NCBI GenBank assembly: GCA_025558095.1 | Contig: JAIVFI010000013.1 | Coordinates: 558,001-622,000 of the forward strand | DNA from: Hyaloraphidium curvatum SAG 235-1 | Taxonomy: Eukaryota > Fungi > Monoblepharomycota | Reading direction: 5' to 3' | DNA length: 64,000 nucleotides | Position numbers and translations under genes: made by a program | Notes under the pieces: generated by a model | Seen by the model: only the letters and a program-made list of their open reading frames with translations | Databases searched by the model: none | Told to the model about the DNA's origin: nothing | Part shown: piece after piece, positions 1 to 17,758 of the stretch | How positions within the stretch are numbered: the stretch's first letter is position 1 | Layout of the letters: each line of letters starts with the position of its first letter

Positions 1-790
1 CATCCACTCTTGCATCCGAAAGCAGGAGCTTCACAACGTCCGTGCTGTTCGCTCTGCACGCCTCGTGGAATCCTGTTTCACCGGCAAATTCGTCCTGTGC
101 ATTGACATCCACACGTGCATCGGCCAGCAGGAGCTTCACGACATCACTGCGATTCCACGAGCAGGCCTTGTGGAAGCCCGTCGCGTTCCGGGTCGGAAGT
201 ATCCAGCCAGACCTGTCCTTGGCGTTGACGTCCACCCTCGGGTCCTCGAGCAGGAGCTTCACGACATCCACATGGCCTTGCACGCATGCTCTGTGAAATC
301 CTGAGGAGGAGACATTGACTCGTTCATCGGCCAACAAAAGCTTCACGACATCCGCAAAGCCGTTTCCACAAGCATTTTCAAATGCAGACGTGAGAGACTC
401 GCTGCTCGCTGAGGACCTCGGGTCCGCCAGCAGAAGCTTCACAACCTCCCCATGGCCCATAATGAATGAGTCGTCCAACGCCGTCATCCCCCATTTGCCC
501 CGTGCTGCACTGACATTAACCCTGTCGTCTGCAAGCAGGACCTGCACAACGTCCGCGTGGCCGGCTTGACACGCGTAGTGGAGCGCCGTCTTGTCGTCGA
601 TGCTGTTCCTCGCGTTCACGTCCAAGCCCGGTTTCGCGAGCAGATGGCCGACCCAAAACGCGTTCCCGGAGCTGCACTGGAGCCACAGCTGGTGCTCGTC
701 CCTCCATCGAGCCTCCACTTTCCACCGCCAGAGTAGCACCATCGCCGCGCCGAGGAACGCAGCGAGCAACAACTCCAGGATTCGGGACAT
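1..790 (-). CDS. Ankyrin-repeat protein with hydrophobic N-terminus (3' end runs off the window)
   Basis: Manual translation from ATG 790: MSRILELLLAAFLGAAMVLLW, then repeated TALHYACQAGHADVVQVLLAD / TGFHKACSWNRSDVVKLLLADARVDVNA ankyrin units. Frame open to position 1. Confidence 0.85.
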   Translation of the reverse strand, partial: MSRILELLLAAFLGAAMVLLWRWKVEARWRDEHQLWLQCSSGNAFWVGHLLAKPGLDVNARNSIDDKTALHYACQAGHADVVQVLLADDRVNVSAARGKWGMTALDDSFIMGHGEVVKLLLADPRSSASSESLTSAFENACGNGFADVVKLLLADERVNVSSSGFHRACVQGHVDVVKLLLEDPRVDVNAKDRSGWILPTRNATGFHKACSWNRSDVVKLLLADARVDVNAQDEFAGETGFHEACRANSTDVVKLLLSDARVD

Positions 791-1549: not shown

Positions 1550-3040
1550 CTACAGCTCTTTCCGCAGCGCGCGCTCGGGCCCCTGCAGCTCCAGCTCCTC
1601 CTTCTTCAGCTCCAGCTCGCTCTTCTTCGCCGCGAGCTCCTTCTTGGCGGGCTCCGCCCCGCGCGCGAGGATTTCCGCCTCCTTCTCCTGCGGCCCGTCC
1701 GCCCGCTTCCGGGCGGCGATCTCGTCGAGCTTGGCCTGCACGAGCTTCCTGATCTCCGGCGGCCCGACGTCCGCGGCGGATTCGCCCGCCTTGTTCCGGA
1801 TGGTCATGTCCACGCGGTCCGTGCGGTCCAGGAGGTCGCGGACGACGTCCCCGTGCCCCTGGCGGCACGCGTGCACGAGGCCCGTGTCGCCGCCGGCGTC
1901 GACGGCGTCGGCGTCGACCCTTTTGTCCGCAAGCAGGAGGTCGACCACCTCCCGGAGCCCCTGGTAGCATGCCACGACAAACGCGGTGGGCCCGTCGAGC
2001 CCGATCAGCGCCGCCAGCATCGCGTCGAAAGCCCCGCCGTTCGGACCGTTCGGATCGATGCGCGCATCGCCCAGGAGGAGCCCCACCAGATCCGGCTTCT
2101 TCGCGAGGACCGCCGCGACCAATCCCGAGGGCCCCTGGCCGTCCCCCAGGAACGCCTCCGCGGCCCGGGGATGGGCGAGCAGGAGCTGCACGACGTCCGC
2201 GTGCCCGTTCAGGCTCGCGTAAGGGAACCCCGTGGCCCCGTCGTTGTCCCTCGCACCGACGTCGACCCGCGGATCCGCAAGGAGGAGCCGTACGATGTCC
2301 GCCCTGCCGTTGCGGCAGGCATCGTGGAGCGCCGTCTGGCCCGCGCCGTTCCTTGCGTTCACGTCGACCCTCCGGTCCGCCAGGAGCAGCCGTACCACCT
2401 CGGCGCTGCCGGCTGGAGAGCAGGCAATGTGGAGCGCCGTGGACCCCGCCCCGTCCTTGGCGTTCACGTCGAACCTGCCGTCCCCGAGCAGAAGCCGCAC
2501 GGCGCCGGCGTTGCCGGAAGCACAGGCCTCCTGGAAACCGGTCCACCCGCCGCCCGTTTTCGCCGACACGTCGACCCTGGGGTTGCCCAGCAGCAGCCGT
2601 ACGATGTCCACCTTGTTCGGAGGGCACGCGCGGTACAGCGTCCGCACTTTTGCGAGGACGCCGGCGGCGCCGTAGGATTCGTCGAGGTCGGCCGCGGCCG
2701 CGGCGGCCAGCCTGTAATGATCCCGGCAGGCGTGGTGGAAGCCCGTGGAACCGTCCGGCCCCTTGGCGTCCGGGTCGATCGCGGGGTCGTCCACCAGCAG
2801 CCGCACCACGTCGATGTGGCAATGCCGGCACGCCAGGCGGAAGCATTCCCCCCATTTGCGCCGATCCGAAGCGGCAGCAGGGTCCCCGAGCGCGCCGCCG
2901 ACGAATGTAGAGTCGCCATTGCGGCACGCATGCCGGAGCTTGTCCTGCGGCACGGGCCCCCCGTCGTTTTGGTTCCGTTGGATGAGCACGGCATCTGCAC
3001 CGAGCAAGGCGGCAAGCACCACGACAAGAATGCGGCTCAT
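1550..3040 (-). CDS. Ankyrin-repeat protein with hydrophobic N-terminus and C-terminal coiled coil; tandem paralog of 1..790
   Basis: ATG 3040 gives MSRILVVVLAALLGADAVL. About 9-10 ankyrin units (e.g. GQTALHDACRNGRADIVRLLLADPRVDVGARD) and a K/E-rich tail. Confidence 0.88.
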   Translation of the reverse strand: MSRILVVVLAALLGADAVLIQRNQNDGGPVPQDKLRHACRNGDSTFVGGALGDPAAASDRRKWGECFRLACRHCHIDVVRLLVDDPAIDPDAKGPDGSTGFHHACRDHYRLAAAAAADLDESYGAAGVLAKVRTLYRACPPNKVDIVRLLLGNPRVDVSAKTGGGWTGFQEACASGNAGAVRLLLGDGRFDVNAKDGAGSTALHIACSPAGSAEVVRLLLADRRVDVNARNGAGQTALHDACRNGRADIVRLLLADPRVDVGARDNDGATGFPYASLNGHADVVQLLLAHPRAAEAFLGDGQGPSGLVAAVLAKKPDLVGLLLGDARIDPNGPNGGAFDAMLAALIGLDGPTAFVVACYQGLREVVDLLLADKRVDADAVDAGGDTGLVHACRQGHGDVVRDLLDRTDRVDMTIRNKAGESAADVGPPEIRKLVQAKLDEIAARKRADGPQEKEAEILARGAEPAKKELAAKKSELELKKEELELQGPERALRKEL

Positions 3041-3516
3041 CGCGATGTTCCGCAACGCCTCGCTGCGACGGAGGGCAGGTGAAGGCCTGTGGCGCCGGAC
3101 TTGAGTCAGGCGTCGGGTGTTTGGCTCCGGGCCGGCCGGCGGGCCCGGCTGAGCCACGAACCCAATCCCACGGATTCCTCAAGCTCGACATTGGGATATG
3201 GACCGCTTGCCGAAAGCTTCGGGATCACTCGTTGGATCCCCTGTGCTTCTTTGGCCGTGCTTGTCCGGCCCGTCCGACGGAAGCACATGCTCGGGCACCC
3301 CCCGGGTGCGCGTTTCGGGAGCGAATCCGCTCCGGATCCCGGCGGATCGCCTTCTCCAACGTCCACTTGGTGCTCTCCGCGATGGAGCTGCTTGGCTTTG
3401 CCACCGAGCGTGCCAGGGATCGAGGGATTGAGGGACGCTGGGGACGGGGTCTGCGGCGCCGCAGCCGCACCGCAAGCCAACTTTCTTCTGGTGGGACGCA
3501 CCCCGTCCCTCCCACG

Positions 3517-4903: not shown

Positions 4904-7900
4904 TCACATGCCCAACAAGGTTGCCGTTGCAGCGCCTATAGGCAGAACCTCGGCCTTCTTCGCCAACTCTAGAACCTCTTCCTGCTTCTCCTCCGGAAGC
5001 GCATTCAGCCACCCCTGAAGCTCCTCTTGGGCCTTGATTCTCCGCTCCCTCCGCGTGCGAATCTGTTGTACCACGTCCGCTGGGAAGGTAGCCTCCAGAT
5101 CCCGCACCTCCCATCGCCAGATCGACAACGGCTGTGGTCCGGTGCCATTTCGCTGCACCCCATAGTTCTTCCTCTCCGCAACGGAAGAGATGGCTTCCGC
5201 AACCACAGATGCAGACAGGTACGGCGGTGTCGGCGCTAGTTGGGGAGCTCAGAGGCGCTCGCTGGGCTTCGGATGCGAAACCCACGGTCATGCGACTCCT
5301 CCTCCTCGTAGGCACAGAGTTTCCTGAGCACTTCCTTTGCCAGCACCTCCCTGCTGGTCGTTTTGTCCTGGACCAGCCTGCCCAGCAGCGGCAGCCACTG
5401 CTCCGGAAACGTTGCGGCTGATTCAGTCTGCGTCCCGCTGAACTCCAAGAAGGTGAACATATCTTCGTGCGGGAACCTGTGAGTCGCGCGGTAGCAGAAC
5501 CAATGCACGCGAGGTGGGAACCTTTCAGGTTGTACGGAGCTGATCCGTAATCCACCTTGCTCTCTTTGAAGATGACCCTCCCATTCTCCACTTGCGCCGC
5601 CGTCGACTCCAGGATAGCCTCGTGAACAGGCGCGCGGCCTCTCTCCGCGCTCTTGCCGTCGCCGGGAGCCCGCCCTGCCCGCGTTTCGGCCTTGGTTTGC
5701 CGGCGGTGTCTTCTCTGCATCTCCTTCAACCTCTCTGCTAACATGCCAGGATCCTTGACTGTCGCGCAAAGCCGCTCAACCAACGAGATACCAATCTTCT
5801 CTACGTCCAGCTGGAACGCTTCCATCGGGGAGGCTCTGCCTTCGATCGCGGACAGGAGCGCGCGGGCGCCATCGTCCCCGATCGAGTTCTTGCGGAGGTC
5901 CAGAGATGTCAGTGCCGAGCTCTCCTTCAACCCCTCTGCGAGCGCCACGGCGCCCTCGTCCCCGATGGCATTCCCGCCGAGGTCAAGGTTGGTCAGCGTC
6001 GAGTTGGCCTTGAGCGCCTCCGCCAGCGCGCGTGCGCCGCGGACCCCAATCTTGTTGGCGGCCAGGTTGAGGGTGGTCAACGCCGAGTTGACCTTTAGCG
6101 CCTCTGCGAGTGCTTGCGCACCGTCATCCCCGACCTTGTTGCTGGCCAGATACAACGTGGTCAGCGTCGAGTTCGCCCTCAGCGCATCCGCCAGCGCGAG
6201 GGTGCCGCCATCCCCGACTTTGTTCGTGTTTAGGTCAAGGCTGGTCAGCATCCAGTTTGATTTCAGCGCCTCGGCAAGCGCGCGGGCGCCCTCGAGCCCG
6301 ATGGAGGTCGCGCTCAGGTGCAGGGTGGCCAGCGACGAGTTCCCGTTTAACGCCTCTGCGATTGCGCGAACGCCCTGGTCTCCGACGCGTTCAAAGCTCA
6401 GATTTAGCTCCTTTTGCTTTGCCAGCTCGGCGCGCCAATCAGCCGGATCGTGAAGAGACACAGAGGGAATGCGCGCCCGAACTCGTACAACTTCGAGATC
6501 AAAACGCGGGGTGCCAGTGACCGGGATGCACGCCACGCCCAGGTGGTGATTTGCCCAGTAGAAGTCAAGTCCGGCGACGGAGCGCTCAGTGCCACAGCGG
6601 CAGCAGCCCGACAGGAAGCCCTTGTCGCCCGGCGGGCGGCGCAGCAGGTGATGCACGATGAGGCCCCGCCAGTCCCTGTACACTTCGAGTTGGTCGATTG
6701 GCAGAGGCCGCAGCTGCGGGAGGGAGCCGGATGGCGCGTTGGCCAGCGCTTCATCGACCCGCTTGCGGTCGGCAGCGCTAAGGCTCGCTACCGTGGCCCA
6801 CCCGCGGCCCGCGGTGCGGGGCGCCGCATCGTCCGAGGACGACGAGTCGCGATTCGCCGCGGACACCGCGATGCGTTTGCTACCTAGGTGAATTCCCTTC
6901 TTCTCTGCAAGTTTGCTGCTTGAGTACGCTTCCTCATCACTGGCAAACAAAGATTCCGAGTCGGAGCTCCCCGAAACGTACGAGCTCCCGTCCGAGCTCC
7001 CTGTGTAGACCGAGCTCCTCGAAGGCGAGTCACGCGTTGAAGAGTCCACTGGTACCGGACCGAGATGAAACGCAATATTGTCCACTGCACCCGGATCAAC
7101 GTTGTAGCTCCTGAGCACGGCTTCCTTCACGAATCCAAACACCATCTGATGCGGGTCGCGAAGCACCAGGCCCGGCGTGTCGTACAGCCGCGGCCTTGAG
7201 GGGAAGAGTAGCCGAACGACCGACAGGGCAGTATCTCTGTAGCTGCCACAGGTCCTGTACAGCTCCAGCAAGAGGTCCGTAGCCGTCCACGTCCCGTGGC
7301 TCCCTTCCCACGTTCGTCCATCCGAGAAAGCCATCTCGAGCCGGTACTCCCCAGTGAACAGGTCCTCCATGTACGATGCCAAAGGATAGATCTGCTGAAG
7401 GGTGTCTTGGTTCACCAAGTCGCGCGAGTGCTTCTGGAACTGTCCCTTCACGCTTTGTCGGATCACGTTCTCTATCGTAGAGGATGACTTCAGACGTGGC
7501 CTCTGGACCGGCATGGCGTTAGACGCCTCGCAGGACCGGGAAACTCAACTCACAAGCTTAAAGACGTCCAAATCAAACTCGACTCGGCCTCGCCCAAGAT
7601 TCATTCGCCGCGGTCTCTGAACCAATGGACCTTCCGTCGGCTCATTGCTCTGTGCGTGGCGCGCGGCGGCCGTTGCATCCGCCGTCTCCAAAAAGATCCG
7701 ATACTCCACGCGGTCCAGGAGCGCGGGCCACGTGAAGCTCTTCTCTTGGCGGTCGAATCGCTTCCAAAGCTCCTCCGCGAGTACAAAAGTGAACAGGCAC
7801 CCGTACGCCTTCTCACCGTGTTGAGCGGCGAATCCGAGGATCACATTGTCCCTGTCCACGTCGAATGGTCGGTCTTCCGTGCCCATGGATCCGCGACAAC

Positions 7901-9545
7901 AATCAAGGAGCACGACCACGAGACCGCGGTGGTCTTCCGGAATCTGGGAGACAACATCGCGTTCCAAATCAACTGTGTTGTGGTCAGCTAGAAGCGTGGT
8001 GTCCCCAGGAGCCGCGGAGACTCCTTCAAACACGAAGCGGCCCTGGCGATCCCCGCCATGCCCAACAAAATGGATGACTGATGTCCCTCGAGTATAACGC
8101 AAGCTCGAAAGCGCAGGACGAGTTGTCGCTCGGATAGCTTCGGCCGTCCAATCAGAGTGCGAACCGTTCGAAGGCAGTTCCGAAAACCCATAGAACGACG
8201 CCAGCACGATGCGCAGCAAATCAGCGCTCTCCAATGCCATGGGCAAGTTCTTTGGATGATCTGCCGGTCCAAAAGCGCCGTTGGCCACCTGCAGCACAAT
8301 GCGATTCACAGGAACTCCTGTCTCCTCGCTGGAATCGCTCGTGCTGGTCACCGCGATATCCGGGGCAGGAGCTGATTCGGTACGCGCAGGGGAGCTGAAA
8401 GAAGCTTGATTGCCAGCAAGGGTCGCTGCCGAATGCGAGTGGCTCGGGGCACTGAGGCTTCCAATGTCGGGAGCCGATGCGGCGGGACCGGAAGCCGCGT
8501 TCGAGATATCCAAGGTGCGTTGCTCAGGTCCAAGAAGCTCATCAACAACGTCGGCGAAGGAAGGGCGTTCGAACCGATCAATCTTGGCGCAGGCCGCCAT
8601 TAGACGCCACGTTTGGTCGTCGTTCGCGATCTCGTACGGACGGGTGAAGGGTAGGTCGCTCAATGAACAACGAACCACGTCCTGGAGTAAAGGAGTAAGC
8701 TCCCGCGACACCAGACTCCCAGCTACGTACCACGTTCGGACGCCCTCCGCACGACATCTCGTACGCGATCACGCCGAAGCTGTACACATCAGCAGGCTTG
8801 TCCCGCTTCGCCGGTGGTCTCCGCAGCGCTTCCGGGGGCATGTAGGATTCGGTGCCCGCGGCCGACGTCCCAGCGAGGTTGCGCAAAGTCGACAGGCCGA
8901 AGTCTGCAATCTTGTACATGCCGTCGCGGATCAAAATGTTGGCAGGCTTCAAATCGCAGTGCAAGACGCCCATCGAGTGAAGGTAAAGCATGCCCCGAGC
9001 CACCTGCAGCAGGCACTTGCGCCGCCCAGCCCACGGAAAAGCTTTTGCGCGCCCCACGTCCTCCAGTACCCTGTTCAGGTCCCCTCCATCGGCGAATTCT
9101 GACACCAGGGCGAGAGGTTCCAGGCAGTAGCCGTGGAATCGTAAAACTGAAGCCAGATCATGGGTCAGGAGGCGGCGCTGCGACGGCGGGGAAGTTCACC
9201 ATTGTCGTCGGACAGTCGCTGCCATATCTCGACTTCCTTCCTCAATGATTCTCGTAGCTCATCGTTCGAACGCGATTCCTTCAGCCTCTTGACCGCGACC
9301 GGAATGGCATGGCGAAGCTTGGCTCTATAGGCGACGGCGAAGGCACCCTCCCCAAGCTTCACGGGCTCCAGTTTCTCCATGTCCAACTTGATGTCCCCGC
9401 AGTATGATAAGAGGAAGCGAGGTCTTTTGATCCGGACGGGCCTCTCTGCACGTGTAGCGCCCGCTCCGGCCCCAGGCGGCGGTGGAGGGGAAAGCGCGTC
9501 GAGAGAGAGAGAACTCCCTCCATCACGGCCCAAATTGCCGGCCAT
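4904..9545 (-). CDS. Multidomain protein: TKL-type kinase + caspase-like C14 protease + domain X + Cys/His motif + RNI-like LRRs + CAF-1-large-subunit-like C-terminal domain (spliced)
   Basis: ATG 9545. Introns 9147-9199, 8682-8730, 7503-7553 (GTGAGT..CTAAC..CAG), ~5477-5535 and ~5236-5285 join the separate ORFs in frame. Kinase motifs GEGAFA, VAVK, HCDLKPAN, DFG, PPE, DVYSFG. Caspase motifs HFVGHGG and LLDCCRG. Seven 28-aa LRRs. Confidence 0.8.
5850..6410 (-). repeat. Seven 84-bp (28-aa) RNI/NLRC3-type leucine-rich repeats
   Basis: LTTLxLxxNxIGxxGAxALAEALKxNS repeated in tandem. Confidence 0.9.
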
Positions 9546-9899
9546 CGCAATGACCACAACAACGGCAACGGGCTCAGAGCCGCCCCGCGGGCCCGGAGGG
9601 CCCCGGCCGAGGAACGGGGAGGCGGGATTGATGGTCTCTACGCGCAAAGCGTCCTGAAGAGGGATCGACTCCAAGTCCCCTGTTCCATCGCCCTTCGCCG
9701 GGTGAGGAGGAGAGTTGATGCAATTTTCAGCTTGTTTTCTCATCCAACACTCAAGCAGGGCTTGAGATTGTTCCGACGACGTGCCCGGGCAGCGAGCTCG
9801 AGAACGGCGCACAGACGTTCGCGGAGCTTCTGCGTCGTCGAAAGTGCCGTAGCAGTAGATCGATCTGAGCTAGGACATACGTGGCAGACATGGACGCGG

Positions 9900-10320
9900 C
9901 CCTTGATTCAGCAGCTTTTACATAGCGTCGAGGATCGCCAACAGCCCATGCGCCACCTCGGCAGACTCCGGCTGCGCCGACAGGCCGAGCTCGCGCGGAT
10001 CGAAGGTATCTGGCCATGCCAGAGGAGTTCTGAGGCGGTCATGCCGAATGCATAAACGTCCGTTGTCGCTGTGCCCGGTCTAGGCGGCCTCGCAAAAGCT
10101 GGAAGTGACTGGTGGATCATTTCAGCGATTTGATGGAGCAACACACGCACGGATCCACCCACCCTCCTGCGCCACGGACACCGGCATTACTCCACCTGCT
10201 TGGTTGCAAGACTGCAGATGGCCCACCCCGACATCGTCCAAGAGATTGTTCTCGCTTGGGGTCGAGATCCACAACCGGATTCGGCCTCGAACGAAGGTGG
10301 TCCATCCCGAGCTCAACCCG
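9900..10320 (-). pseudogene. Decayed protein-kinase remnant
   Basis: Fragments TDVYAFGMTASELLWHGQIP (subdomain IX) and LLDDVGVGHLQS (aligns with LLKEVALGMAYLHS of the adjacent kinase) lie in different frames with stops. Confidence 0.5.
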
Positions 10321-10336
10321 GAAAGGGATGGAATGA

Positions 10337-12220
10337 TCACGGCAGCTTGGCCTCCAGCGCCCACAGCCGCTGGTACACCTCCGGGAACCGCGGCCGGTCC
10401 TCGGGCTTCTCCTTCCAGCAGTCCCCCATGATGACCCACAGCTCCTCGTTCGCGCCCTCGGGCTTGCTCGGCCGCTTGCCCTCCACCCTCACCAGCTTCA
10501 TGATCTGCACGGGGGGCGGGGTCGTAAGATGCGGCGGGCACGGAACGCGAGGGAGGACCCACCATGGGCTGGTTGCCCCTGGCCTCGTAGAACGGGAAGA
10601 GGCCCTTGCTCACCACCTCGTACGCCACCATCGCGAAGGCGTAGACGTCGGCCGGCGGCTTGAGCGACTGCGTGTACCGCTCGGGCGCCTGGCGGCCAAA
10701 GATGGATCAGCGCCCCGACCACGAACGCCAGCTCCCACCCGAACGAACCATGAAACCGGGAGTCCCGCCCCATCCCTGCCCCGACATCGTCAGCGCCACC
10801 CGATCCCTCAGCCTCGACATGCCAAAATCCGTGATCAGCGCTCTCCCGTCGTCCACCAGTATGTTGTGCCCCTTCAAGTCCCCGTGCAGCACCGGCGTTG
10901 GCAGCGAGTGCAGGTAGGCCATCCCCAGCGCGACCTCCTTGAGGAGCTTCACGCCGATTTTGAGGTCCCAGTTGCGCTTGGAAAGGTACGTGCGGAGGTT
11001 GCCCTCCCGGACGAGCGCCGAGATCATCATGGGAGGGTCCTCGCAGTAGGCCATGAGTGGGAGCACTGCCGGGCCTCAGCCGCCGTGCGAGAGGTTAACA
11101 CCGGCCGTGAGCGACCCACCGTGCCTGTGCCGCAGCTTCTGCCACATCCGCACCTCCTTCTTGAAGTCCGCCCGCGTGCGCTCGTCCACGTTGCCCTTGA
11201 TCACCTTGACCGCAACCTTGTTGGACTTGAACAGCACGCCCCGGTACACCACGCCGAACCCGCCCGCGCCGAGCTTCTGGCTCTCGTCGTAGACCACGTC
11301 GTACGCCTCGATCCGCAGTTCGTCGGGCTCTTCGGAGCGGGGGCCGGAGCCGCCGCTCGCGGAGGTCGGGGGGGTGGCGGGGGAGCTGCCGGCGGCGGCG
11401 GGGGAGCCATGCCGGTCCGGTCGGGGGGGGTCGGGGGAGATGAGCATCACCGGGGGGGAGGCCGGAGGGACGACCACGGGCCGCCGGACGGGCGGCGCGG
11501 GGGGCGGGTAGACGGGTTTGGCGGGGATGGCGGCGGCTTGCGCGGCGGGGGCGTCGTCGGGCCGGGGGCGGAGGTTGGCGGGGGCGGCGACGGGTGGGGG
11601 GATAAATTGCTGCGGGGGGCGGAAGACGGGGGGTTGCAAACGGGGGGCGGGGATCGGGGCCGGCGGGCCGTCGATTGGCGAGAACGGGACCCCGGCGGGG
11701 GTCCCCTGCTGGAGCGGCATGGCGATCGGCGCCGGGACGGGGCCCGCGGCGCCGACGACGGGCGACTGGGGGACTGGGGCCTCATCCGACTTGCGGTCGT
11801 CGATCTTGCGGTGCCCAAAGATCTTGCCCAGGCCGCCAAAGAGCTTGTGGCCGCCGGCGGGCGCGGGCTTGTCTGATCCAGCGTTGCTTCCCCCAAAGAG
11901 GGCGTTCCACTTGGCGGCGACATTGCCCGCGGAAGGGCGGCCCGCGGCGGCGGCGGGAGGAGACGGTGGCCGGGGGATCTCAGGTTGGGGAATGTTGGAG
12001 TACCGGTTCGGCTCGAGGCGCGAAATCTCAGGTTGAGGAATGTTGGAGTACCAGTTCGGCTCGACGCGCGAGTTGAGCTTCTCGAGCAGGTCGGTCGAGC
12101 GCTCGATGAGCGAGTTCCAGCGGTCGAAGAGGGTGTACTCTGAGATGGGCACGTCGAGCGAGGCGATGGACGCCTGGATCTCGCTCAGCTGTCGCCGCAT
12201 GGTATTGAACGACACGTTCT
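10337..12220 (-). CDS. Helical + Pro-rich region followed by a TKL-type kinase; probably the 3' part of the gene starting at 15262, possibly a separate gene
   Basis: LGAGGFGVVYRG, VAVK, HGDLKGHN, DFG, GTPGFM|APE, DVYAFAM. Three GT-AG introns (~11066-11119, ~10689-10747, ~10505-10563). Stop after EAKLP at 10337. Confidence 0.8.
11975..12070. repeat. Two-copy 48-bp tandem repeat encoding EPN(W/R)YSNIPQPEI
   Basis: atctcaggttg(g/a)ggaatgttggagtacc(g/a)gttcggctcga appears twice with a 48-bp period. Confidence 0.85.
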
Positions 12221-12234
12221 GAGTGGTTGATCGA

Positions 12235-15200
12235 TTAGCGATAGGAGGGCAACCGATGGTCTGGACAACCCATGTTCGGGGTCGTGGCCGGCAGCTCGCC
12301 CTCAAGTGCGCCGCGGAGGTCGCTCGGCAGTGACAGTGGCATCGTGGGCGCCTGGTGCATCGCCTGGCGACTGAGCGTGTCGAGGAGGGCATCGAACAAG
12401 TTGATCCGACTCCTGACAGAGGCGAGTTCGCTGTCCTCGACATCCTCGACTGGGGCGAAGACGGGCAACTGGGGCGGCACCACCTCGTTGGACTCGCGCT
12501 CCCCGGCCTTGCGGTGCTCAAAGACGTTGCCCAGACCGCCAAAGAGCTTGTGGCCGCCGGCGCGCGAGGTTTTGGCCTGACCAGCGTTGTTGCCCCAAAA
12601 GAGGGCTTTCGGCTTGGTGACGGAGAAGAGTGCGCCTCCAACGGCATCCTTGACCGGGGAGGAGGCAGGCAGACCATGCGATCGCGGAAGGTGTGCGGAG
12701 AAAACTTCTGATTCGGGCTCCAGTGGAGCCGCCCCGCGGTTGGAAAGCGAGTGATCAAGGAGAAACATCGTCTCCAGCTGGCCCGTTGCAGTTGGATCCC
12801 GCGTATCACGATAGCTTTCAAGCACGGCTTCCTTCACGAATCCAAACACCATCTGATGCGAGTCACGAAGCACCAGACCCCGCGTATCGTACAACCGCGG
12901 TTCGGAGGAGCAGAGCAGCCGTACGACCGACACCGAAGCATCACGGTAGCTGCCACAGGTCCTGTACAGCTCCAGCAAGAGGTCGGTCGCCGTCCACGTT
13001 CTGTGGCTCCCTTCCCATGTTCGTCCGTCCCAGAAAACCATCTCGAGCCGGTACTCCCCAGTGAACAGGTCCTCCATGTACGTTGCTAAGGGATAGCTCT
13101 GCTGAAGCTTCTCCAAATCCTGAAGGTCTTGCGCACGAAGCCGGAACTCCTCGCCCAGCCGGGCCCGCTGCCGGTATTCTTTCGCGTCAGTGGTCTTAGA
13201 ACGAGGATTCTGTGAAGAAGGCGCTCAGAATCATCCTGGGCAAGACTGACCGGGACCAAGTCAACTCACGAGTCGAAACGAGTCCTTCTCCCAGTCAACG
13301 TGACCACGACCGAGATTCACATGCCGTGGCTGCTGAACGAATGCAGGCCCGGTTGGCGGTCCGCCTTGCGGAAACGCAGCCGCAACAGCTGTTCCGGCTA
13401 CAATCCGCTGGTCCACGTCATCAAGAAGCGCGCGCCACGTGAAGCCCTGCTCCTGTCGGTCGAACCGTTTCCAAAGCTGCTCAGCGAGCACGAAAGTGTA
13501 CAGGCACCCGTAAGCCTTCTCCCCGTGCCGAGCGGCGAAGCCGAGGAGCACATTGTCCCTGTCCACGTTGAACGGTCGGTCCTCGGTGCCCACAGATCCG
13601 CGACAGCAATCAAGTAGCACAACGACGAGACCGCGGTGTTCTTTCGGAATCTGCTTAATGATATCGCGCTCCAAGTCCAGCGTGTTGCGGTCGGCCGGCG
13701 GGGTGCCGTCCGTCGCGGGTGACGAGACTCCTTCGAACACGAACCGGCCCTGTCGATCCCCTCCATGTCCAACGAGATGGACAATCGACGTTCCTTGAGC
13801 AGCCCCGAGACTCGAGAGCGCAGGACAAGCAGCAGTCCGGATAGCTGCGGCACTCTGATCGTACGACGGCGATCCATGGAACCCGTAGAAGGACACGAGG
13901 ACCGTCCGCAGCAGATCGACGCTCTCAGAGGCCATCGGCAGGTTCTTGGGATGATCCGTTGGTCCGTAGCCACCGTTCGCAACTTGGAGCACGATGCGGT
14001 CCGCGGCCCGTTCCTCCTTTTCGGGCCGGCCGGTCGCGGCCATCGATAGGCTGCTCACATTCGGTAATGACAGGCTGCCCACATCCGGTGCCAATAAGCT
14101 GCTCACGTCCGGTACAGATCCGCCTTGAGCCAAACTAGACGACGGAGCATTGCCCACGGAAGGCGAAAGCATGTGGGATTGCGGTGCAGGAACTTCAATC
14201 CGGGGTTCCGAGAGCGCGCTCTCCAAGCTTTGGACAATGGCGAAGAAGGAAGGGCGGAGGAAGGATTCCACGTGCGTGCAGGCTGTCATGAGCCGCCACG
14301 CTTGTTGGTCGTCCGAGATTGCGTACGGGGGTCCCGGTGCCAGTGAGCTTCCACTGATGAGGAACTCCACCCGATTCTGCAAGCCGCCGTGTTACGAGAC
14401 GAGGATCTCATATCGAATTGGCCCAAGAGACGTACCACAGGTGGGCGCTCCCCGCAAGCAAGCTCGTAGGCAACCATTCCGAAACTGTACACGTCACCAG
14501 GTTTGTCACGTGGTGCCGGTGGACTCCGTAACGTTTCCGGAGGCAAGTATGAACGAGTTCCCGCGCTCGACCTCCCCGCAAGATCCCGCAGGGTCGAGAG
14601 CCCAAAGTCCGCGACCTTGTAGACGCCATGGTCGACTAGGATGTTGGCGGGCTTCAAATCGCAATGGAGAATGTCATTCGAATGAAGGTAGCGCATGCCC
14701 CGGGCAACCTGGAGCAAGCAGTCCTTGAAACCCGAAATCGGAAAACAATCCGGCCGTCCCGAAGCCCTCAGCTCCCTCAACAAGCGATCCAGGTCCCCGC
14801 CACTGGCCAGCTCCGATACCATCGCAGGGGGATCGTCGCAGTAGCCGTGGAAAATGAGCACTGGAACCCGAGCCCGATGAGCAAGAAGGTGGGCGCGTCG
14901 CACAGCGGGAGCCCACCGTTCCTGTCCCTAAGCTTCTGCCAGACCTCGACCTCGGCTTTCAGTCCTTGCAGAAGCTTCTGTCGGTCAGCTCCAGGCCTTT
15001 GGTGGAGGATCTTCACGGCGACCGGCGTCGCCCGTTTGAGCTTCGCCCTGTACGCGACCCCGAAGGCTCCCTCGCCGAGCTTCACGGGCTGCAGCGTCTC
15101 CAGGTCCGTGTCAAGCTCGACATGGTCACGGAAGGAGAGGAAGAAGTCTGGCCGTTCCACCCGGACGCCGTCTCGAAGCACTGAGCCCGCCGCGGCGGCC

Positions 15201-15262
15201 GGCGGGGGAGGCAACGGCTGCTCGCCCAAAGGGCGCGGATCCTCGCCCGGGCCATCGGCCAT
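12235..15262 (-). CDS. Paralog 2: TKL-type kinase + caspase-like C14 protease + domain X + linker (likely continuing into the 10337-12220 kinase)
   Basis: ATG 15262. Introns 14861-14916, 14377-14435 and 13210-13269 fall at the same positions as in copy 1. Motifs GEGAFG, VAVK, HCDLKPAN, DFG, HLVGHGG, LLDCCRG and YPLATYMEDLFTGEYRLEM. Confidence 0.8.
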
Positions 15263-15613: not shown

Positions 15614-17383
15614 CTAAGACGGGCACATGCTCTGCACGGTGAACGACACGCCCGCGCCGCGCAGCACGCTCCACAGCGCCACGCCCAGCGTCACCGCCGT
15701 CACCGCCAGCGTCTTTGCGAGGCCCCACGTCACAGGGATACCCAGGAAGGTAGCCCTGAGTCCCTCTGCGGTGCCGAAGGCGGCCAGGAACCCCGCGTGG
15801 GCCTCGAGCTCCGCAGCTGCTTGCGCACGGCGGGGATCGGGCGGCAGCCGCGCGGCCTCGGCCAGCATGCCGCGGATGGAAAAGACGGCGTCGGTGTAGG
15901 TCCTCGAGAGCGCGTCGATCTGCTGGTTGATGGCCGGGAGGTCGGATGTATCCACGACGATGATGTAGAGGGCGACAACGATGTTGAGGATGCACCAGAG
16001 GGTGATGCAGCCGCCAGCAGCCAGGTTCACGGCAATCGCGACAAGCTGCACCACCGGAAAGAAGGAGATGATCAGGCTCATGAAGGTTGGGGGCCCGGCA
16101 AACACCTTGCGCGGGCCTGTGCGCTCCCATTTGGCGCGATAGCCCAGGTGCAGCCGGACGTAGAGTTCGGAGGTGGTGGTTCCAGCCTCGGGGACGCCGC
16201 CACTGGGATCGTCCGAGGTCGCGAAGAGCAAGCGCCGGCGGTAGCGATCGAGCAGGTCCTGGATCGCGCGGAAGCTGGCACGGAGGTAGATGCGGGTCTC
16301 CAGATCTGTCTCGGCGGAGCTGTCCGAACCAAAACGCATGACAATGCCCGACAGGTTGTACACTAGAATGGCGGCGACTTGCGGCCCGGGAAGAATGATG
16401 TCGGTGAATGTGACGATGACCGCCGTTCGCAATCACTCACATAGCAAAACTCCCAGGGCCACGTAGGCTCCCGACGCCCAGAAAAAGGAGCCGTAGTATA
16501 CAAGGGGCGTCCAGCACGAGGCAAACAGGACGAGCACGTTGAACCCGTTCAGCGGAACGGTCCGCAATGTGCGCTCCCAGAAGCTCCAAGCAAGAACTGT
16601 GCGGGAACAGCACGTATGACATGGGCACGCGTCGTCGCCGTCCACGTGGGCCAGTAGCGGCGCCCCTGCTAAAACCGCCTGGCCCCAGCGGTGGAGGCCC
16701 GAGAGCGCGCGCGCCAGGAGCACTTCACGCCTGGGCAAGCCGCGCGTGGCGGCGAGCATAAAGACGTGCATGACGATGCCGGCAGCCATCACCATGGCCA
16801 GTGCGGTCATGCCCGCGGCGAGCTGCGGCGTCCCGAAGGTTCCGCCGCCGAAGGAGAAGACGGCGGCGTTGGCGGCCAACGTGCACGCCGTGCAGGCCGC
16901 AAAGGTCAACAGGAACGTACGAGATGTTCCGATATGCAGCGCCGCCGCTGCGGCGACCGCGTCCACCATGCGGAGCAGTCGAATCTCGCCCAGCGCTGCG
17001 AGGGTCGCGCGAAGTTCGTCCGGCGTCGGCGGCGCGGCGTCCTCCGCGGTCAGCAACTCCTTGGCGTCGTCCGGCTCGTCCGCGAGGGAGATGGGGAAAG
17101 ACGGCCGCGCACTGACGGCCGGCGGCGGCGGCGGGAAGATGGCGGCGAGTTCGACCGCGCTGAACTCCAGCGGTGCCGCGCCGGGGGCGGGCTGTCCGTT
17201 CATGCCCGCCGGGTCACGATCCAGCTCGATCTCCTCTCGATACGAGACGGGAATGCCGGCCGATTTCGGACTCGTGGGCCGAAAGCGTGGAGATTCGTCC
17301 GCCAACGCGTCCCGAAGAGGGGCCGACGGCGGCGCGTCCTGCGGGTGCGGCGGCCCGCCATCGCGGCCCAAACCGCCGGACAT
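15614..17383 (-). CDS. Multi-pass membrane protein, possibly 7TM ion channel (gustatory-receptor-like/DUF3537-like)
   Basis: ATG 17383; intron ~16378-16440 (GTGAGT). About 7 hydrophobic segments and a C-terminal ATFLGIPVTWGLAKTLAVTAVTLGVALWSVL motif. Confidence 0.6.
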
Positions 17384-17758
17384 CGCAGACTGCGTTGCCC
17401 TCAACGGGCGGGAGCGTCACCTCGACCCCGCAGCGGCGCAGTGCGAGGAACGGGGCGGCCGGGGGATTGTTGTCTCGAACGCTGCCTCGGTCTGGACCGC
17501 CTGTACTCACCGGACAACCCCTCAGACTAGGCAGGGTCCTTTCCATCGCGAGAGCACAAGGCATTGCCCGACCTTGCTCCGACGACCTTCCCTCCGGACC
17601 CTGGCCGGACAGCACCTCGAATGAGAACGACCGCCTTGGCCGCACATGAACAACGGACGGGTCGGACGCGCAGCGGCGAGAAAGCCCGGCATCCCTGCAT
17701 CGCCACCCGGGTGGCATTCCTTCCATTCACGTCCCATCCGCTCGCACGTCCGCCCCCG

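Follow-up and report, generated by a model that had tools for sequence, protein, structure and literature searches.

To our knowledge, almost all that has been learned of fungal immunity comes from the Dikarya, whose sensors combine NOD domains with repeats (WD40, TPR or ankyrin) and employ CHAT or S8 proteases. Hyaloraphidium curvatum is an early-diverging, aquatic fungus (Monoblepharidomycota). Here, we describe a 64,000-nucleotide stretch (the window) of contig C13 of its genome (31.9 Mb, 55 contigs; its proteins carry the NCBI label Hyaloraphidium curvatum), in which two tandem genes on the minus strand, copy 1 (4904..9545) and copy 2 (12235..15262), each encode a kinase, a caspase-fold protease and a small conserved domain, X, in a single chain. 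The architecture is apparently undescribed: literature searches for kinase-C14-X proteins in fungi and for Hyaloraphidium caspases, made mostly without subscription papers, returned nothing relevant. The design principle, an all-in-one sensor with a caspase-like protease, is already known in fungi in its CHAT form. Judging from the architecture, we lean towards regarding these proteins as lineage-restricted, cytosolic, all-in-one switches for the surveillance of non-self or damage, with a presumed role in immunity or cell death.

Several described systems share parts of this design. The paracaspase MALT1 (MEROPS C14B) has the same caspase fold and His-Cys dyad, and in both cases a small domain follows the protease. 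However, MALT1 possesses death and immunoglobulin (Ig) domains, neither of which occurs in the kinase-protease-X family, whereas the family carries a kinase in the same chain. Proteolysis by MALT1 requires dimerisation and release from Ig3, which lies just C-terminal to the protease; for fungi, the review PMC4357240 lists metacaspases only. The fungal type I metacaspases (Yca1/Mca1) have the clan, fold and dyad in common with the family (Yca1: Z 12.6, 14% identity), but the Pro/Gln-rich prodomain is theirs only. Among fungal cell-death sensors, fusions of a caspase-like protease with repeats are on record (PMC12881547, PMC8851545). For instance, HET-Q2-like gasdermin-activating sensors combine an S8 or CHAT protease with repeats or kinase-like domains in one chain and in variable architectures (PMC8851545, PMC12881547), as is the case here, except that the protease is of the C14 type, the repeats are leucine-rich repeats (LRRs) rather than TPR or WD40, and an active-looking N-terminal kinase is constant. 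The plant tandem kinase(-pseudokinase) and kinase-fusion resistance proteins, such as WTK1/Yr15 (PMC6170490), are alike in the non-RD kinase, the C-terminal pseudokinase of several members, the extra integrated domains and the decoy logic. In contrast to these proteins, the two kinases of such H. curvatum members flank the protease and X, and no NLR partner is known for the family; common descent was neither searched for nor seen. Lastly, the bacterial EACC1-associated caspases (PMC7159879) also join a constant caspase domain to highly variable C-terminal domains. The family differs in the eukaryotic kinase in front and in its spliced eukaryotic genes; an EACC1 partner was not searched for, and the match to NCBIfam NF047832 is weak (E 4e-4 to 7e-4) and, at 19-20 bits, below the cut-off of 140. 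Pfam found neither NACHT nor NB-ARC in the exons and public models scanned, which places the proteins outside the NLR/STAND class, and PADLOC gave no match.

Exon joining at GT-AG introns yields two stop-free open reading frames, so that the two paralogous spliced genes with three matching introns proposed by an earlier, sequence-only reading of the window are borne out. Copy 1 encodes 1459 residues (exons 9545-9200, 9146-8731, 8681-7554, 7502-5522, 5462-5286 and 5235-4904) and copy 2 encodes 950 residues (exons 15262-14917, 14860-14436, 14376-13270 and 13209-12235), with introns 1-3 matching in position and phase. For intron 4 of copy 1, an alternative at 5535-5477 is in frame too, and 5521-5463 is preferred by alignment with the donor gene described below. 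Transcript evidence is provided by the assembled contigs of a single RNA-type run, which drop rare forms. These contigs skip exactly introns 8682-8730, 9147-9199 and 7503-7553 of copy 1, the last having been singled out earlier for an RNA check. A single contig leads from the kinase C-lobe of copy 1 through the protease into X, and a second from X towards the linker. Since introns 1-3 are crossed in spliced form, the presence of kinase, protease and X of copy 1 on one transcript is supported; within copies 1 and 2, the splicing evidence covers these three introns only. The NCBI model of copy 1 (P0013, 698 residues) ends right after the protease and is contradicted by the RNA joint; its truncation apparently comes from a different splice choice. 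The NCBI model of copy 2 (KAI9024169.1) agrees in splicing and in its end at 12235, with a start further upstream. Bacterial contamination is ruled out by the spliced introns and the NCBI organism label. In both copies, the intron between protease and X (7503-7553; 13210-13269) is in frame with an early stop, and its retention would give a kinase-protease without X; the spliced form is the only one seen.

The protease is a C14B, paracaspase-like domain located at 7554..8303 in copy 1 (His462 at 8060, Cys516 at 7898) and at 13270..13998 in copy 2 (His461 at 13767, Cys515 at 13605), both on the minus strand. Pfam Peptidase_C14 passes its curated cut-off of 21.4 bits in both protease exons (22.3 and 24.5 bits), and a profile built from eight homologs found MALT1 as its only match in the PDB (E 0.001). 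The AlphaFold model has a mean predicted local distance difference test (pLDDT) score of 66, with a poorly resolved C-terminal half (pLDDT <50). Its top structural match is human MALT1 (Foldseek E 9e-7; VIA Z 13.3, root-mean-square deviation 2.9 over 145 residues, 25% identity), with caspases and metacaspases next in rank, and its best 22 fold matches are clan CD proteins only, so profile and fold both confirm the caspase-fold assignment made earlier. By Z alone MALT1 (13.3), caspases (13.1) and Yca1 (12.6) tie, and identity favours MALT1 (25% versus 9-16%). In the Atlas, the clusters lying closest consist of bacterial caspase-domain proteins, and the genome's own Mca1-like metacaspases are remote from the family (hhalign probability 22%). 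The suggestion that the protease is nearer to paracaspases and bacterial C14 domains than to Mca1 metacaspases is thus supported, with MALT1 ranking first by profile and by structure. Searching for homologs with the protease alone gave none or one match in a length-limited search. A distinct ankyrin-FHA-caspase gene with an intact dyad (L020; C4:293689-297009) lies outside the family.

The His-Cys dyad (GHGG, LLDCCR) is intact in copies 1 and 2 and invariant in all eight family loci, including those described below. In MALT1, the acidic S1 pocket for Arg is formed by Asp365, Asp462 and Glu500 (PMC4357240). Only Asp462 is kept in the family, and Asp365 and Glu500 align with an invariant Ser and Gly in 8/8 sequences. 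Because these two residues are replaced, Arg specificity is not predicted, and the predicted protease activity is not assured. The loss of two of the three acidic residues, together with the low pLDDT of the C-terminal half, would suit a weak or inactive protease serving as a scaffold, that is, a dimerisation module controlling the kinase, which would then be the real output. We consider this quite improbable: His, Cys and Asp462 are invariant at all loci, the ratio of nonsynonymous (dN) to synonymous (dS) substitution rates is lowest in the protease (0.12-0.20), and it is the kinase that degenerates, in locus L042.

The N-terminal kinase of copy 1 (8545..9375, minus strand; Pfam Pkinase E 1e-32 on exon 2) is of the tyrosine kinase-like (TKL) type and non-RD (HCDLKP), with intact catalytic motifs. 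VAVK, HCDLKPAN and DFG are present in copies 1 and 2, and the glycine loop, the VAxK lysine, HCDLKP and DFG are retained by each N-terminal kinase of the genome copies, for which reason these kinases look active. All N-terminal kinases of the family are non-RD, and this class is tied to immune receptors in plants (PMC6170490). Domain X follows the protease in copy 1 (7100..7502, minus strand) and copy 2 (13209 to about 12810, minus strand, from the start of exon 4). It comprises ~125 residues and is modelled as a small alpha/beta domain (pLDDT 77.5) without recognised family or fold. Pfam, PDB sequences and three fold searches gave nothing usable (best Z 4.6), the fold searches showed no Ig fold in the model, unlike the C-terminal Ig domain of MALT1, and the Atlas features offered a weak BEN lead with a low recognition score, which was not usable. 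X may represent a new small fold, although weak matches do not prove novelty.

The genome-wide search proposed with the sequence-only reading brought three further kinase-C14-X copies, making exactly five detectable copies in the genome, all intact. The tail of copy 3 (contig C30) is a duplicate of the family's own kinase, that of copy 4 (C30) consists of ankyrins and a pseudokinase, and copy 5 (C23) has a short tail with no tail domain. A search of 1.84 billion protein representatives gave seven matches, three of which come from other samples (L042, L043 and L044). The three genes are eukaryotic and spliced, have a GC content of 52-54% and preserve the kinase-protease-X order. Common intron positions, a housekeeping neighbour 92-94% identical and the same ankyrin type suggest that they derive from relatives of H. 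curvatum. L043, ending in an acidic tail, and L044, ending in a pseudokinase, are from one metagenome. L042 has a degenerate kinase (HFDLNLNN, without the catalytic-loop Lys), a frame break inside X (L042:11605-11695) and a pseudokinase; the break could mark a pseudogene or an assembly error. Scans of bacterial and archaeal genomes, viral contigs and phages contained no relatives, and a scan of JGI metagenomes gave one weak 26% match that could not be tied to the family.

Across the eight loci there are at least five kinds of tail, in line with the constant core and variable C-terminus proposed earlier; a kinase or pseudokinase is the commonest (4/8), and two members are without a folded tail. 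A kinase and a second kinase or pseudokinase are combined in one chain in copies 3 and 4 and L044 (in L042 across the frame break), and not in copies 1 or 2. Purifying selection acts on each of the three core domains (dN/dS 0.12-0.33 across kinase, protease and X). The kinase of copy 1 is nearest to that of copy 4 (81% amino acid identity; tree support 100/99) and its X to that of copy 2 (83%, dS 0.37), and these different nearest copies of the two domains indicate that paralogs have undergone recombination or conversion. An intact tandem kinase-kinase gene of 644 residues without protease or X (L012; C30:about 408000-410050) is located about 9 kb from copy 3, and its first kinase is sister to that of copy 3 (99/98).

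The tail of copy 1, ~690 codons that are stop-free over three junctions, was assembled from three donors. A Ser-rich linker leads up to domain Y (6504..6800, minus strand; containing CCRC), which shares 62% identity with a portion of an unrelated gene on contig C4. Next come RI-type LRRs, about seven in number and 28 residues long each (5860..6407, minus strand; Pfam LRR_6, E 5e-32), which are closest to those of the genome's LRR(-ankyrin)-kinase family. The third piece (4982..5617, minus strand) is an internal fragment of a CAF-1 p150 gene on contig C34, with both introns retained, 82% nucleotide and 80% amino acid identity and a dN/dS of 0.21; in the donor gene, the Pfam CAF-1 p150 domain lies further down from the piece copied into the last 180 residues of copy 1. 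For this piece dN is 0.11 at a dS of 0.54, whereas ~0.27 or more would be expected of a neutral captured copy (our estimate, a difference of roughly 3 standard errors, assuming equal rates). Since dN is well below this value, the fragment is probably under constraint, although a functional duplicate as an intermediate step might account for the low value as well. It matches the pattern of an integrated decoy and would be a putative bait. Elsewhere in the genome, at least 60 LRR matches cluster on contigs C6, C33 and C15; for both the LRR-kinase arrays and the CAF-1 gene, reading covered loci of 3-4 kb, and the four LRR loci read are LRR(-ankyrin)-kinases. These loci (L054, L055, L056 and L059, on C6, C15 and C33) belong to a large family of cytosolic LRR(-ankyrin)-TKL kinases whose genes lie in clusters; the kinases read carry HLDLK. 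Among fungal NLRs, sensors of the LRR type are said to be uncommon, and this LRR-kinase repertoire may merit separate study.

Copy 2 had been read as continuing through a Pro-rich linker into a second kinase ending at 10337; this part of the sequence-only reading did not hold. After X, its frame passes through k3-derived pieces (12617-12456 and 12435-12274, minus strand), that is, a duplicated piece of a gene of the type found on contig C6 and a homolog of that gene's first exon. Because the donor of the next intron (12219..12273, minus strand), homologous to intron 1 of the C6 gene, reads ATGGGT instead of GTGGGT, the frame enters the old intron and stops at 12235. Removing 12273-12219 on paper restores a 1507-residue fusion. 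However, such a protein is ruled out by the dead donor, by an RNA contig that is ungapped over 12162-12850 and by the end of the NCBI model at 12235. The same contig is identical to the genome, without gaps or differences, which rules out an assembly error at the donor. Twelve other in-frame GT/GC-AG joins of copy 2 to the kinase are possible on paper, and 0/12 were seen in the RNA contigs, which could miss a minor isoform. For want of a single base, the capture event in copy 2 thus falls short of joining the kinase in frame, and the gene today encodes a tail-less form.

The Pro-rich kinase unit, k3 (10337..12218, minus strand; exons 12218/12200-11120, 11065-10749, 10688-10563 and 10504-10337), is separate from copy 2 and ~90% identical in nucleotides to the standalone C6 kinase gene, which has its own start codon. 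As the spliced kinase RNA contigs carry C6 alleles at 11/41 differing exon sites, they merge the two paralogs. The window-specific 3' region of k3, with its own intron (10109-10162) spliced, is found in RNA and therefore shows that the k3 unit of the window is transcribed. This region contains the decayed kinase remnant noted previously (10000..10335, minus strand, running from 10335 to about 10000), the C-lobe of a kinase of the LRR-kinase family. In k3 (12442-11120, minus strand), the ancestral start ATG at ~12442 is kept and, with the dead intron left unspliced, now reads across it into exon 2 in frame; k3 has also gained an ATG at 12200, where the C6 paralog has GTG. Either ATG could permit separate translation.

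The out-of-frame kinase of copy 2, the tail-less copy 5, the decayed kinase between the copies and the frame break in X of L042 would all be expected if only the core were functional and the tails were neutral by-products of a rearrangement-prone locus that sense nothing. To this explanation we give very little credence, in view of the long stop-free tail of copy 1 and the low dN of its CAF-1-like piece; moreover, copy 4 and L044 form a group by their pseudokinase tails, albeit with weak support (85/94).

Taken as surveillance switches, the proteins could work as follows. The variable tail (LRRs and bait-like host fragments in copy 1, a pseudokinase or ankyrin-pseudokinase in others) would be bound or modified by a foreign molecule or its tampering, and its engagement would bring two chains together. 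The non-RD kinase would then trans-phosphorylate, and the paracaspase-like domain would dimerise, be released from X and cleave a partner or the linkers of its own chain, with a defence response or regulated cell death as the output. X is proposed as the release domain because it sits where Ig3 sits in MALT1. This scheme is favoured by the core in five genome copies and three outside loci, the dyad in 8/8, the top rank of MALT1 in sequence and structure, the purifying selection on the core, the mosaic ancestry, the three-donor tail with its constrained CAF-1 piece, the LRR-kinase repertoire of the genome, the non-RD kinases and the precedent of the known fungal protease sensors. The notion of a receptor with a swappable sensor is weakened, as LRRs are found in 1/8 members (copy 1), half of the tails are kinases or pseudokinases and two members lack a folded tail; module capture and the variable C-terminus are themselves supported.

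Besides this scarcity of LRRs and the replaced S1 acids, several further observations weigh against a surveillance role. The family is small, with its five genome copies, its core shows no sign of diversifying selection, and non-RD kinases are also common among unrelated kinases of the genome, so that the trait discriminates little. No neighbour gene common to the family loci was found. Pfam scans of the genome gave no match to CHAT (a weak negative) or to gasdermin, whose Pfam model derives from animals and could overlook the fungal forms, and together with the comparison of neighbours between loci revealed no executioner. An active kinase-protease switch might instead act in non-lethal stress, nutrient or developmental signalling, with tails that set location or partners. 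MALT1, the nearest structural relative, is a signalling protease and scaffold whose part in the NF-kB pathway involves no killing, the surroundings yielded no pore-forming effector, the one RNA run contains the copy 1 transcript, and the core is under purifying selection. Nevertheless, non-lethal signalling seems unlikely to us, as it leaves unexplained the repeated tail capture, the retained host-protein fragment, the LRRs and the domain-level recombination. A surveillance role for the family, in its most far-reaching form, would make it an independently evolved class of fungal immune receptors without NOD or gasdermin, joining a RIPK-like kinase to a paracaspase-like protease of new specificity, with captured LRRs, pseudokinases and CAF-1 p150 baits and a large LRR-kinase repertoire; we put this forward tentatively and would sooner expect it to need revision than to hold in full.

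Upstream of copy 2 lies a gene for a multi-pass membrane protein (15614-17400, minus strand) without a Pfam match, whose N-terminal leader DNA (17354-17476) is 71% identical over 127 nucleotides to the start of copy 1. Downstream of copy 1, past an EamA transporter gene, there are two ankyrin-repeat genes of the lineage-typical repeat type (1550-3157; 2-589, minus strand).

The earlier description of the core stands throughout, in that the intact TKL kinase motifs, the caspase-fold protease with its dyad, domain X, the LRRs and the kinase remnant were all confirmed. At this locus, module capture can be watched while under way, and the truncated public gene model of copy 1 is corrected. From the changes in its S1 pocket, the protease is predicted to be a clan CD enzyme with a new specificity, and the single-chain proteins lend themselves to tests in yeast. 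If the surveillance role is true, an early-diverging fungus would have reached the kinase-plus-caspase logic of animals and the integrated-decoy logic of plants by an independent route.

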